DNA of 64,000 nt from Pavona decussata (GCA_977016875.1 CDRNST010000244.1:62001-126000); one strand, 5' to 3'. Shown: positions 17,066 to 50,897, counted from the stretch's first letter. The notes: a model not told the origin generated them from the sequence alone. Program-made: numbers and translations.

Positions 17066-17561
17066 ATGGCACAGAATGGTAGACCTCCCAATCGTGCGTA
17101 CAGCCCATACGCTGTGGACAGCTTAGAAGATTTATCCAAAGAGCAGAGCTCTTTTAGCGGGGGCTACCAGAATGGCGCTTACTCAAACTTAGGACTTCGG
17201 CAAAGCCGGGAAAACATTCCAAGAAACCTCAGCACATTTAAAGGAAGCTACCAGAGTCCATCGTATGAAAATTCCGAAGCTGCACACCAATATGAAGACC
17301 CTTCTCACTTGACGATTCCTCCGCCAAGCACTGGACCTCGAAGAAAACGCAACGAGATGTATGAACCCACCGAAATTCGACAGACTGAGAAAGAAGCAGA
17401 AAGCGATGATTTTAGTGAATACACCTTTGGGGACTCGTGGCTGAGCCGACTGATATTATTTCTGATCTTGATGATCTCTCTTGTCTCGCTGCTTCTCGTG
17501 GTGATGATAGTTCTCGGCAAGCTGGGACCAAGCTGCTCCGCTTGCAGTGAAGAGCAACAAG
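17066..17561 (+). CDS. Gene A variable first exon A1: Tyr-rich cytoplasmic tail plus type II TM helix
   Basis: ATG at 17066; 496 nt; phase-1 donor CAAG/GTATGA. TM SRLILFLILMISLVSLLLVVMIVLG followed by KLGPSCSAC. Paralogous to A2, A3, B1 and B2. Confidence 0.85.
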
Positions 17562-19654
17562 GTATGATACTTTCCAATTGTCACTCCAAAGTTTACTTAA
17601 CGCTTTTTTTTCGTTATTTGACCTTTAGGTACAATGTAACGCTTGTCCAAGAGTCTGATTTTAGCGAGTTTCTTTGTTGATTGGGTCAGTTTTGTACATG
17701 CATGTTGAAATGTTAGGTATATTGCATCGGAATGTAGCGGGGTAATATTGTTCTTAATTAGAGATAATTGTGTCGACAACAATCACCTTACTGTGATTCA
17801 TAGTACTTTATGATTCTAAAACGAGGGATTTAATAGAACAAACGATACACAGAAAGTGCAAGTATACTTTCTGTCCTGAGAGTGCGACTGTTTTTCTGCC
17901 CAAGGTGCATTCACTGTGTTAAAGCGAAAGTTATTTAAAAATAACTTTCGCTTACGTAAGGGGCCGGTTCATGATCACGAGTTGTTTTTAACAAGAAACA
18001 AAAAACAAAAGGGAAAAAACCAGATTGTTCCGCTTTCCCGTGTACGGCGCATGGCTTTTCAGTTTTAATCACACCAGACGTGTTAAAACCCAAATTCCTT
18101 TGTCAGTTAAGGTTGTTTGTCCCCAAGCTTTGCTTGCCCATGGATGCAGTGCTTTTATTTTCCAGTTGATTGTCTAACGTGGCTACGTGCCATGGCAGAT
18201 TTCTCAGTAATCCTTGATGAACTTGCCGGTTTTTTGTTCACCCCACAAAGCCAATGTTCATGATTTTTAATCCTTGTTCTGCAAGATTCAAAACTCTCGC
18301 TTGTTAGCCTTTTTTTTGTTATTTTTTTTTTCACTTCACTGATGGAATTTTAAAATCACGTACGTGCCTTTTAGCAATAATTGTCTAACTTTGGTTCAGC
18401 TGTTAATCTGTTCGCGTGTTGGAAGGTTTATTAAATTAAATTAAATTTAATTTAGCCCTTTTGGAAATTTCATTTAGCCCTTTATGGAAACATCACGAGA
18501 AATTACTCAGCAGTCTTGGTAATTGTGTGTTACGCGTTCTATGGTTTCTGCAAAATTAACACACACTAACTATGATTTAGCAGAAAATGAATGGGACAGA
18601 ATTGCCGCTTCTTTCTTAACCCTGCGGTTTGCTGACATAAGATACGAGCATAAAAAATATCGCGTTAGTCAGAAAGTATCTTCATTGGTCAGAACTTAGT
18701 TGACTGAAATAGAATGCTGTCAGTATATACGTTGTCTATTGGGTCCATCCACTGGCGTTATAAAGGAAAATTACTTTGTCTATGGACGTATTTTTAGCCG
18801 TTTACTCGTAGGCTTCTTGATAAACGGAGGATTTCAGTCATATTCCCCAGCTGGCCTGCTTAGTTTGACCTTGTTCAGTATCTCTATTCCACAAGAAAGT
18901 GTGCTTTTAGTTTTTATTAAATTTGCTTCCGAATAAAAATTTATAGCCTTCGACAAAGCTCTTGTTCGTGAATTTTTCACTCTCAAAGACGATTGTAATG
19001 CAGTGCATACAATTGTAAGCTCCACAGTAACATCAGGTTTGTTGTAACACCACGATGATCCTTGCTTCGTTCTGGTTCTTCTGAAAACACGTACAACCGA
19101 TCACAACCCTGCTGAATAATTATTTGGATTATGTTTGTTTTACACCGTTTAACTTCTGCGCGGAAGAAACTTTAGCATCCCACGCAGGCGTTTTTAGGGG
19201 ACTCATATTTAACTTTGGCCAAGGCTAAGCCTCCATTGTTTACAAAAGCTTTTGCTCGATTTGAGTTGATATCATTGTCTTTAAGCCCATATCTATGTAG
19301 GGTTTATTAGTCCTTAAGCCTGTTAATTGTACCGACACGCCTCCAGATCACGTGCATTCGAAGATCAGGTTTAGACATACTAAGCGCAGTAGTTTTGCTA
19401 ATATAAATTTTCATTTTAAAAACTGCAACAAGGCCAAGGCGTTCGTTAATTATTGTGGCAAGTCCCTAGTTTCAGGTTAGAGTAGATAGGCACTGAAATA
19501 AAAGTAGCATATAAAAATTGTACTGTCGCAACACGTGAAAGGTTCTATAGACAGACGTTCGTATGGTAGTTAACTAATTTTAATGCCATTTTGAAAGGAA
19601 GTTATAAGAAAGAAAAAGAACCCATACAGTGTCCTATTTTAATAGTACACTGTA

Positions 19655-19708
19655 TAATAAATCGGTGTTTCGCAACATTTAAAAATGTTGCGAAACACCG
19701 ATTTATTA
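19655..19708. repeat. Near-perfect 54-bp palindrome
   Basis: TAATAAATCGGTGTTTCGCAACATTT-AA-AAATGTTGCGAAACACCGATTTATTA. Confidence 0.8.
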
Positions 19709-48876: not shown

Positions 48877-49171
48877 AGCCGCCGTTACACGTTGAAACTT
48901 TTAGCTGAAACTTGTGTGCAACGGCGCTGCGAAACAAGTTTCAGCTGGCGTTGCACCGTGTAACATGGTCGGTTTCGTGAAACTTTTTCGAACTTCCGTT
49001 GCGAGACAAGTTTCACGAAAAGTAGAACCGCTTTCTACTTCTGCAACGGCTCGCAACGGTCGCTGTGGTGAAAAAACAAGAGTTTCACCGTGTAACACCA
49101 CTTCGTGAAACTGGTCTCGTTCGCCGTTGCACACAAGTTTCAGCTAAAAGTTTCAACGTGTAACGGCGGCT
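48877..49171. mobile_element. Harbinger-type MITE with TAA target-site duplication
   Basis: Perfect about 50-bp TIR AGCCGCCGTTACACGTTGAAACTTTTAGCTGAAACTTGTGTGCAACGGCG; TAA on both sides. Confidence 0.9.
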
Positions 49172-50485
49172 TAACTGACATTTTCTCTCTAGCTATAAAA
49201 CTGTAGTTAGCTAGTACAAGAAAACATCATAAGTCAAGTAAATTATTAGCTCTGCGCTATGCAAAATTCGAGCAATTAAATTTGAACAATGAAAACAAAT
49301 AACTTGCAAGCCGAATTGTTCTATTGTGGCCAAACGTTTCCGTTTACAGTCAGGTTTCCTATTTTAGCTCCTGAAAACCGAAATTTTCTGCACGCAGCGC
49401 ACTTTATATTAGTACCTTTAACAGGCTGTCCTTAAAGATATTTCTCTTTTAGAGGCCACAGCGAAAAATGACGGAGAGCTTTTAACCTCTACAGTATGTT
49501 CAGCAAACAAAGCATTCAATAAACATTTTTAAAAATCAGCTTTTCATCGAATTTTGGCCTTAAAAATCTGCGGATTGATTCCATCAGTATATAAAAGGAA
49601 ATCATCTGATAAAGCTCTTTATTCATGAAGTTGTCCATTGAGAACCTACCCGCGGCGCCCGGCCTAGTTCATTCGGTTTAAAAAAAAATGAAAACAATTT
49701 TTTTGGGGGTTTTTCAGTTAAAATCTTGATTAGTCTTTATAGAAATGAGAATGTAAACCTGAGCATATTCAGTTTTACCAAGAATTGAGAGATCAATTTA
49801 TCGAAGACAGTATTTTCCTGAACTCTTTGGTACTCGCTGGTAACTAATGTTCTTATTATCATGCCAGAAACTATTTTGCTTGAGAGAAGTTTCTACATGA
49901 CGGGAATTTAAATGGGATATGTAGGAAATTTATAAGTGAACAGTTATTTATTGATCTCTATTTTACGTCTTGTAATACATTTGTTGGTGAACGAATGCTG
50001 CATAAAAGCTTGTATGCATGGAAGCGCTGCAAGATTTTACGTCAATCCTTCGCGAAGAACTTAACTTCAAAGTCTGCGGTTAGTTGTCTCTTTGTATCAC
50101 TATTTTGTGTAAAAGTACGTAAGTGTTTTGATGTTGTTCCTCCTTAAAGATTTCGCATATTGGCACGAGAAAAATTCGCAATATTTGTCAGGTCATGACG
50201 GGACAAATTCTCGAAACTGGCGATGGACCCAAACGAAACTGAATTCCGCATAGTTAGGAAAACTTTAATTCTAGTTTTTGTTTGAACTAATATTTCATCA
50301 TTTCCCTATTGTAGAAGTTACAGTTTCTATCGTGAAAATTACCAAAACAAGGCTCAATATTTAATGATGTGGCTCAGACTGAAGGAATGAATTGAATTTG
50401 CATTTACGATCCTCCAATAAACATGACAGTAATCAACAACAAATTAAAAACTGATAAGAAAAAATACAAACATAAGTGAACTCAC

Positions 50486-50897
50486 CTGATCTACTGCACG
50501 AACATTTGGGTCCAACTTTACCCATCATCAACATGATAGCCAGCAGTAACGCTACGAAAGCCACAAAAATAATCAAAAACATCAAAACAAAGCGAATTAT
50601 TTTGTCTCTCCTCCTTTGCTTTGCACGGGCCGGCTTCTTCGAAGTTTGAGAAGTCCTTGAATTCTGTTGGCTCCCAGTTCTTGGACCAACGTCATCGTAT
50701 AAGGCATTCCGTCCTTTTTGCGGCGTTGGGTTGAAGTTGTTTTGGTTGCTCCATTGTAGTGTGTTGTAAGTGTTGTCGGGTTTTTCATCGCCAAAAGAGA
50801 CATTGTCAATCGCGTTTATGCTTGCGTTGCTTCTTCGATCTAGGCTTATTGTGCTTCCGGCAAATCCCTGATTCAAACGTCTCAACTGCCCAGACAT
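50486..50897 (-). CDS. Gene B variable first exon B1: cytoplasmic tail (YNTL, YDDV) plus TM helix
   Basis: ATG at 50897; 412 nt; phase-1 donor TCAG/GTGAGT. TM IIRFVLMFLIIFVAFVALLLAIMLMMG followed by KVGPKCSC. Confidence 0.82.

Follow-up and report, generated by a model that had tools for sequence, protein, structure and literature searches.

How do corals connect what they meet at the cell surface to the machinery inside the cell? Corals and sea anemones must choose which microbes and algal symbionts to admit or reject and, to our knowledge, a connection from the cell surface to intracellular signalling is known for few of their receptors. The question is raised by a 64,000-nucleotide stretch of DNA from Pavona decussata (GCA_977016875.1, CDRNST010000244.1:62001-126000), which we refer to as the window. 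A sequence-only reading had described six open frames in it, A1, A2, A3, B1, B2 and C, as a graded repertoire of cytoplasmic tails with tyrosine motifs, and had proposed a logic of paired activating and inhibitory receptors. All six frames were recovered at the positions assigned to them. The analysis indicates that the locus consists of two convergent genes for type II membrane collagens with the N-terminus inside the cell, that A1-A3 and B1-B2 are alternative first exons of genes A and B, respectively, rather than members of a set of six genes, and that the tyrosine motifs of these five tails are candidate docking sites. The family offers a concrete entry point to the question, a receptor-like ectodomain joined to tyrosines that are fixed across stony corals.

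Among the homologues of the A1 frame are named proteins of Desmophyllum pertusum and Acropora digitifera, which identifies the window as stony-coral nuclear DNA; the stony corals Oculina, Stylophora and Porites and the sea anemones Nematostella and Actinostola also gave family matches. The window has no N runs, and genome-wide searches covered the 602-Mb assembly. Each of A1, A2, A3, B1 and B2 has its own ATG and ends at a consensus phase-1 donor, and a single strong phase-1 acceptor precedes exon 2 in each gene, at 27411 (+) and 45891 (-). A single collagen exon and a single head exon were found per strand by an all-versus-all comparison of open frames, by tblastn with full-length relatives and with a head profile. 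Because the donors are in the same phase and there is one acceptor and one constant exon set per gene, the five frames are best described as alternative first exons. Since each phase-1 donor fits the single shared acceptor, the choice of promoter or first exon would change the tail while the ectodomain stays the same. B1 and B2 bring different tails to a common ectodomain through a single constant exon set and acceptor. This gene design is unusual in that the variable first exon encodes the cytoplasmic tail and not the ectodomain. The coordinates of the features are collected in Table 1.

Spliced models from other corals were compared exon by exon. The Acropora digitifera locus has the same order, A1, A2, A3, exon 2 and last exon, followed by the convergent collagen exon of gene B, with N runs hiding the gene A collagen exon and the A/B interval. 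In one NCBI product of this species (P0020) the A1 exon is followed immediately by exon 2, with A2 and A3 left out, and a second model starts at A3 and has the same 3′ end. Full-length products carry the A1 tail in Oculina (475 aa), the A3 tail in Stylophora (499 aa) and Desmophyllum (501 aa), and the B1 tail in Porites (467 aa); an annotated B1 product is also present in Acropora muricata. No spliced product with the A2 or the B2 tail was seen among the annotated products. The gene B isoforms X1 and X2 of Acropora muricata were considered as evidence of first-exon switching and rejected, the difference between them being a cassette exon and not a first exon. An open frame of the window (43401-43649, -) matches the 29-residue segment that separates these isoforms and is probably a cassette exon.

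Table 1. Positions of the receptor genes, their tail motifs and associated features. Coordinates are those of the window unless a contig or locus is named; fractions are orthologues that keep the residue.
Feature	Position	Strand	Observation
Gene A first exon A1	17066-17561	+	Donor AAG/GTATGA, phase 1; 128-residue tail and membrane anchor
A1 SPYAVD (Y15)	17102-17119	+	Y15 kept 35/35; also in Nematostella and Actinostola tails
A1 YQSPSYENS (Y62, Y67)	17249-17275	+	Y67 kept 35/35
A1 HQYEDP (Y76)	17285-17302	+	Y kept 35/35; H, Y and D at least 90% over 18 tails
A1 PRRKRNEMYEP (Y99), basic patch then NxxYE	17336-17368	+	Y kept 35/35
Gene A first exon A2	21172-21688	+	Donor AAG/GTGAGG, phase 1
A2 HQYEDP (Y78)	21397-21414	+	Kept 8/8
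A2 PKRKDNGLYQS (Y106)	21463-21495	+	Kept 8/8 as NxLY[EQ]S
Gene A first exon A3	24948-25410	+	Donor TCG/GTGAGT, phase 1
A3 HQYEDP (Y48)	25083-25100	+	Y48 kept 6/7
A3 PRKRYNDMYEP	25149-25181	+	Y76 kept 7/7; Y72 (YNDM) Tyr 3/7, Phe 4/7
Gene A constant exons	27411-31691	+	tblastn with Oculina and Stylophora full-length proteins; acceptor 27411
Gene A constant exon spans	27411-27559; ~28560-28677; ~29554-29656; ~29860-29956	+	
Gene A exon, collagen and head start	~30670-31037	+	
Gene A exon, six-Cys head with stop	~31506-31691	+	
Head exons	30958-31691; 39878-41280	+; -	Model m2f031b734ad3
Gene B first exon B1	50486-50897	-	Donor CAG/GTGAGT, phase 1
B1 YNTLQ (Y44)	50754-50768	-	Y kept 23/23; Leu at +3 23/23
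B1 NALYDDV (Y67)	50688-50708	-	Y kept 23/23 as Y[DE]x[VI]
Gene B first exon B2	47492-47852	-	Donor AAG/GTGAGC, phase 1
B2 conserved block RTRADSTSSYVVLRETAK, RxRxxS and SxYVxL	47748-47801	-	Orthologue alignment
B2 juxtamembrane CCRGLCFHR, candidate palmitoylation cluster	47598-47624	-	C77, L81, C82, H84 and R85 invariant
Gene B constant exons	39878-45891	-	tblastn with Porites P0130; acceptor 45891
Gene B constant exon spans	45891-~45734; ~44458-44333; ~42999-42898	-	
Gene B exon, collagen	~41559-41212	-	
Gene B exon, head with stop	~40039-39878	-	
Gene B possible cassette exon, coiled-coil stalk	43401-43649	-	From Acropora muricata isoform pair
Open frame C	37075-37491	-	Judged outside the receptor system
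Fourth family gene	C4:272896-273147; L004 7882-8604, 3205-3858, 1126-1302	-	

The tails must face the cytoplasm if their motifs are to be read there. The proteins have no signal peptide and a single anchor, the N-side flanks of the anchors of B1 and B2 are strongly basic, and the stalk, the N-glycosylation sequons (NFS/NLT at the head start) and a disulphide-rich head with six cysteines all lie C-terminal to the anchor; this arrangement supports the cytoplasmic orientation on which the earlier proposal depended. The ectodomain comprises a coiled-coil and collagen stalk followed by a small six-Cys beta-sandwich head. Collagen (PF01391) was the only Pfam match, both in the shared exon and in eight full-length relatives. 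The head, of about 85 residues, has six invariant cysteines and an N-glycosylation sequon and was predicted by AlphaFold2 as a six-stranded beta sandwich with a predicted local distance difference test (pLDDT) score of 90. No relative of it was found in the PDB by sequence profile, and Foldseek against the PDB returned none at E <= 0.001. The best VIA-align matches, the C-terminal domain of PCSK9 (Z 6.5) and resistin (Z 5.3), fall below the noise level of about Z 8, and a resistin-like trimeric head should be taken as a lead only. Look-alikes in the ESM Atlas were bacterial hypothetical clusters only, near 0.91, and were uninformative.

Orthologue sets were assembled for each tail from three word searches and one exhaustive profile search, followed by orthogroup assignment. 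A recount from the first ATG to the splice donor gave 9, 7 and 5 tyrosines before the anchor in A1, A2 and A3, 2 in B1, 1 in B2 and 0 in C, exactly the series described before, and all the quoted motifs were present. The hexapeptide HQYEDP is identical across A1, A2 and A3, and a basic patch followed by NxxY occurs in A1 (RRKRNEMY), A2 (KRKDNGLY), A3 (RKRYNDMY) and B1 (KGRNALY), also as described. When the tails were pooled, tyrosines were kept in at least 95% of the orthologues at 10 of 24 positions versus 86 of 541 for the other tail residues, a 3.8-times difference (Fisher p = 0.003). The conserved residues other than tyrosine flank the conserved tyrosines, an island pattern typical of short linear motifs. 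The ratio of nonsynonymous to synonymous substitution rates (dN/dS) of the tails, relative to a related coral that is 87% identical in A1, was 0.16 for A1, 0.18 for B2, 0.40 for A2 and 0.61 for B1. A chance origin of the motifs is excluded. Conservation in orthologues had been named as the check on the motifs, and it held for the A-type core (35/35), B1 (23/23) and B2 (16/16). For the five tails the observation is real and stronger than the sequence-only reading could know, and the interpretation attached to it, a reasonable hypothesis that passed this sequence-level test, is partly supported.

The A1 tail shows which of the tyrosines are constrained. All 35 orthologues, with identities as low as 49%, keep the tyrosines of SPYAVD, xYEN, HxYEDP and PR[KR]KxNxxYE[PS]. 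At the Y67 site, NP occupies positions -3/-2 in 33 of 35 orthologues and Asn is found at +2 in 34, giving the family consensus YQNPAYEN[ST], in which a canonical NPxY overlaps a YxN. Y62 was kept in 32 of the 35, with Phe in the remainder, Y12 in 27 and Y119 in only 3. Y34 (the Grb2-type YQN) and Y39 (YSNL) sit in a segment missing from 22/35 orthologues, a lineage-specific insert. The A1 tail, the one that was folded, is predicted to be disordered: AlphaFold2 with 41 sequences gave residues 1-122 no secondary structure (pLDDT 46-60) and residues 123-150 a confident anchor helix.

The other two gene A tails are conserved to different degrees. A3 is 66-70% identical in Acropora, Stylophora and Desmophyllum. 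Its YNDM had been read as a docking site for the p85 subunit of PI3K, a reading that fails at a tyrosine replaced by Phe in 4/7 orthologues. Both Y78 and Y106 of A2 were kept in all eight orthologues, and its second YENS in 3/8. The A2 exon of the related coral (locus L006 15096-15617, contig ctg14551) has an in-frame stop and has lost three tyrosines, and no A2 exon was found in the Desmophyllum locus (L003); for these reasons A2 is the least constrained of the five tails. The exon may be becoming a pseudo-exon in some lineages. The counts of the graded 9-to-0 series are right, and the gradation is partly an artefact, given that YQN/YSNL, Y119, YNDM and the second YENS are not conserved.

The two gene B tails carry their own motifs. 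In B1 both tyrosines were invariant in the orthologues (Table 1), and the Asn at -3 of Y67 was poorly kept. The B2 tail contains RTRADS, SSYVVL and the juxtamembrane CCRGLC. SYVxL was present in 16/16 B2 orthologues, as [ST]-S-Y-V-x-L, within an 18-residue block, RxRx[DS]S..SSYVVLRETAK, and R18, R20, S23, S26, Y27, V28, L30, T33 and A34 were each kept in at least 90% of them. SSYVVL matches (S/I/V/L)xYxx(I/V/L), the consensus of the ITIM (immunoreceptor tyrosine-based inhibitory motif); this match, which had been pointed out before, is conserved. CCxGLCxHR of B2 was fixed as well. The B1 and B2 motifs fit the SH2 and AP-2 consensus alike.

The family is narrow in its distribution and may be old. 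A profile search of 1.84 billion representatives yielded only 126 relatives; the named ones are all from corals or sea anemones, with the addition of one hemichordate protein, and no vertebrate member was seen among the relatives found. Across 18 aligned tails, Ptychodera included, only the tyrosine of PR[KR]KxNxxYE forms an invariant column, and the H, Y and D of HxYEDP and the R, N and E of the core motif are present in at least 90%. The Nematostella proteins 'collectin-12' and LOC5505053 have all four A-type motifs in the same order, Actinostola paralogues have the core motifs too, and YEN is also present in sea-anemone tails. The Ptychodera flava protein (P0171, XP_070578545), in which GPRKKxNxxYE recurs, runs from a long tail keeping GPRKKKNPTYEE through an anchor, a coiled coil and a short collagen to the same six-Cys head; should it be orthologous, the family is older than the split between cnidarians and bilaterians. 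Elsewhere in the Pavona genome, on a different contig, a fourth paralogue has a first exon that carries a module of HDYEDL and GPRKKTNxVYEST twice. Public annotation gives the family automatic or 'uncharacterized' names only, and a limited literature search found no publication describing these tails.

What, then, would such tails do? We favour, with modest confidence, a reading in which they are adaptor-docking and internalisation modules, the set being chosen by the first exon for a fixed, trimeric ectodomain. Each first exon would supply a start codon, a cytoplasmic tail and a membrane anchor, and promoter or first-exon choice would swap the tail beneath the constant ectodomain. The A-type module would consist of SPYAVD, (NP)xYEN, HxYEDP and PR[KR]KxNxxYE[PS], that of B1 of YxTLQ and [LV]YDx[VI], and that of B2 of RxRxxS followed by SSYVxLRETAK, plus the juxtamembrane Cys cluster. 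NPxY/NxxY would be docking sites for PTB domains, and YxN, YxxP and YxxL/V, once phosphorylated, for SH2 domains; when a ligand clusters the trimeric ectodomain, this would lead to internalisation or engulfment and to signalling through tyrosine kinases. Potential reader domains are encoded in the genome, with at least 39 SH2 and at least 8 PTB matches, some of the latter closest to ARH, GULP and Numb among solved structures. Because YEDP, YENS and YEPT have no hydrophobic +3 residue of the kind found in AP-2 sorting signals, the A-type core favours SH2/PTB docking. Asn at +2 is the defining requirement for binding by Grb2-class SH2 domains; the Asn of YEN (34/35 A1 orthologues) fits this pattern, and binding would follow upon phosphorylation. 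Phosphorylation, the identity of the partners and any inhibitory isoform are points that we infer only.

Several observations weigh against this reading. In the window's own A1 the Asn of NPxY is gone and the site reads SPSY, and the swaps between Tyr and Phe at Y12, Y62 and A3 Y72 show that some tyrosines act as plain aromatics. A2 looks relaxed or decaying in the related coral, the B1 tail evolves fast beyond its two motifs (dN/dS 0.61), and conservation and splice phase are the sole grounds for the use of B2 as a first exon. The partner assignments are consensus look-ups based on vertebrate work, and a complex prediction with an ARH-like PTB domain and residues 55-110 of the A1 tail gave no verdict either way.

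The same motifs could also be purely trafficking signals, in which PTB adaptors (ARH/Dab2/Numb/GULP) read NPxY/NxxY and AP-2 reads YxxL/V with no tyrosine phosphorylation; the tails would then determine only how fast and by which route a scavenger-like receptor is endocytosed, and the first exons would produce differently sorted isoforms. The canonical NPxY in the family consensus YQNPAYEN fits this explanation, as do the NPVY and NPTY that stand at the core motif in Nematostella LOC5511226 and in Ptychodera, the match of B1 YNTL and YDDV and B2 YVVL to YxxPhi (Phi, hydrophobic), the presence of ARH/GULP/Numb-like PTB genes in the genome and an architecture like that of endocytic collagenous receptors. 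However, the best-kept A-type motifs, YEDP, YENS and YEPT, misfit YxxPhi, and the core motif mostly has no Pro of NPxY and has a basic, not a hydrophobic, residue at -5. At the core a canonical NPxY was found only in LOC5511226, in Ptychodera and in one B1 orthologue; at the A1 Y67 site NP[AS]Y is present in 33/35 orthologues. Fixed Asn at +2 and Pro at +3 are selectivity needs of SH2 domains of the Grb2 and Crk/Nck classes, respectively, and the strictness of both here (YEN, YEDP) is not a need of sorting. Sorting and docking also overlap rather than exclude one another: LRP1 and APP use the same motifs for both sorting and signalling. Because the YQNPAYEN consensus is a canonical NPxY, a point absent from the sequence-only reading, PTB docking or endocytosis is as likely as SH2 signalling at that site. 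As a complete account of the tails, trafficking appears unlikely.

Three intronless PTB open frames in the genome, two of them in tandem (L007 3006-4175 and 7630-8625, +) and one elsewhere (L008 2030-2674, -), may be retrogene-like copies of an endocytic adaptor; the solved structures nearest to L007 3006-4175 and the L008 frame are those of ARH (LDLRAP1), GULP and Numb.

The conserved B2 motif bears on the proposal of a paired activating and inhibitory repertoire, in which B2 would be an ITIM-type inhibitory isoform acting through an SHP-type phosphatase and B1 and the A tails would be activating through adaptors. The combination of Val at +1 and Leu at +3 is well matched to SHP-class SH2 domains, and S/T-x-Y-V-x-L is kept in 16/16 B2 orthologues on an ectodomain common to B1 and B2. 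Contig C66 (1230539-1243774, +) has two SH2 exons followed by tyrosine-phosphatase exons, a candidate SHP/Corkscrew-type gene that could provide the phosphatase. On the other side, chance would give a lone tyrosine a match to the loose ITIM consensus in about 6% of cases, and most vertebrate inhibitory receptors have two motifs, ITIM or the related switch motif (ITSM), that engage both SH2 domains of the phosphatase. The 18-residue conserved block suggests a more specific partner or a Ser/Thr phosphorylation cluster, a spliced B2 transcript was not seen, and C, the proposed Tyr-free member, is unsupported. In favour of pairing, ITIM-like motifs, and others resembling the ITAM (immunoreceptor tyrosine-based activation motif), have been reported in the tails of cnidarian allorecognition proteins of the Hydractinia Alr family (PMC9546547). 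Activating and inhibitory pairing is compatible with B1 and B2 at the level of a loose consensus and a single motif, and we regard the paired repertoire as improbable. The related and bolder proposition, slightly more doubtful still, is that a pre-bilaterian family flips the sign of its signal by first-exon choice, with a gene B tail that has either YxTL and YDxV, as the activating type, or a single SHP-recruiting ITIM. If true, an animal that lacks adaptive immunity would achieve paired-receptor logic by switching isoforms, and might use it to govern the uptake of symbionts or microbes.

A role independent of tyrosine chemistry was also considered, such as binding of a cytoskeletal or FERM-type partner, binding of membranes or phosphoinositides by the basic patches, or nuclear targeting of a tail freed by intramembrane cleavage. 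Every tail has a K/R-rich patch, and the patches look like nuclear localisation signals; signal-peptide-peptidase-like proteases are known to act on other type II membrane proteins. The conserved residues H74, D78, P79, R92, K94, R95 and N96 are not tyrosines, and Phe replaces several of the tyrosines. Nonetheless, the four core A-type tyrosines and those of B1 and B2 were never Phe in 35, 23 and 16 orthologues, respectively, which argues for a need of the hydroxyl, in phosphorylation or in specific hydrogen bonding, and makes this last explanation very unlikely.

Comparison with known systems places the parts of these proteins in different company. Like class A scavenger receptors and membrane collagens (MSR1, MARCO, SCARA3, SCARA5, COLEC12; collagens XIII, XXIII, XXV), they are type II proteins in which one anchor is followed by a stalk of coiled coil and collagen, expected to trimerise, and by a small C-terminal head, and orthologues have automatic names such as 'macrophage scavenger receptor types I and II-like', 'SCARA3-like' and 'collectin-12'. 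They share with this class the type II orientation and the collagenous stalk. Membership was rejected on domain content, since Collagen is their only Pfam domain and the head has no profile match in the PDB and no significant fold match. Unlike the scavenger receptors, the coral proteins have no SRCR or C-type lectin domain and their head has no significant solved relative; their tails, of 89-139 residues, have conserved tyrosine arrays, whereas those of vertebrate class A scavenger receptors are short; and the coral tail is swapped via alternative first exons. Because one survey of scavenger receptors in cnidarians made SRCR or lectin domains a requirement, this family fell outside it (PMC5119243).

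By analogy, the closest functional parallel to the tails would be the NPxY/YxxL tails of APP, LRP1 and CED-1/Draper. APP (GYENPTY), the LRP1/LDL receptor family and CED-1/Draper/MEGF10 likewise have a disordered tail with NPxY- and YxxL-type motifs, which recruits PTB adaptors (ARH, Dab, GULP/CED-6, Shc, FE65) and SH2 proteins. In YQNPAYEN the corals have the same YxNPxY layout as the YENPTY of APP, with an overlapping YxN. Those receptors are type I, with C-terminal tails and unrelated ectodomains, whereas the coral motifs are N-terminal; the coral core motif, a putative binding site, usually has no Pro, unlike theirs, and is preceded by a basic patch.

The arrangement of exons resembles the protocadherin alpha/gamma clusters and UGT1A, with tandem first exons that have their own ATG, donors of the same phase and one constant exon set. 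Protocadherins have a variable ectodomain and anchor and a constant tail; the coral genes reverse this, with a variable tail and anchor and a constant ectodomain, and have only 2-3 variable first exons. As in the type II lectin-like receptors NKG2A/NKG2C and Ly49, the N-terminal tail would decide the signal. Vertebrate paired receptors, however, are separate genes whose activating partner acts via a charged anchor residue and an ITAM adaptor, whereas the coral pair would be isoforms of one gene with a single motif, recognised from sequence alone. A short collagen followed, at the head start, by an N-glycosylated sequon and Cys is a feature in common with CTHRC1 (NFSQC here, NYKQC in CTHRC1). 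CTHRC1 is a secreted protein with a signal peptide and a C1q-like head of 130-150 residues (PMC7058181). Membership was rejected; the coral family is membrane-anchored, its head has 85 residues and there is no sequence match.

The sixth frame, C, had been proposed as a Tyr-free family tail and was rejected as such. It has no paralogue in its own genome. In the 31.7-39.8 kb interval tblastn found no family protein matches and the head profile found no head-domain exon. Tail profiles gave C only 7-14 bits, driven by the hydrophobic anchor segment. An orthologue is absent from the syntenic interval of the related coral, where the flanking non-coding DNA aligns at 74-79% and window positions 35.1-38.2 kb are missing. 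By our base-composition estimate, chance would produce a 138-codon frame about once in 64 kb. We treat C as an unsupported open frame because it has no paralogue, family homology, downstream head exon or orthologue and because of this chance expectation for its length. Thus, of the six tails described, five are supported as first exons, and C is not. Its absence, with these boundaries, from the protein collection was uninformative. The 3-kb indel that holds C also holds a dispersed repeat of about 970 bp (35689-36661). This repeat has at least 45 copies in the genome, with 83-96% identity, and a reverse-transcriptase-like fragment (~34996-35124) lies just upstream of it.

Other observations concern relatives of the two genes. 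The fourth family gene has a long coiled-coil exon followed by a six-Cys head exon, and no collagen; its orthologues (P0083, 464 aa) were found on many 2.2-kb Logan contigs that resemble mRNAs. Nematostella LOC5505053, LOC116619587, LOC5513022 and 'collectin-12' are located on one chromosome-scale record (17,865,913 bases), which suggests a cluster of paralogues. The related coral has a pair of Endonuclease_NS (PF01223) open frames upstream of its B1 exon (locus L002 859-3422, +).

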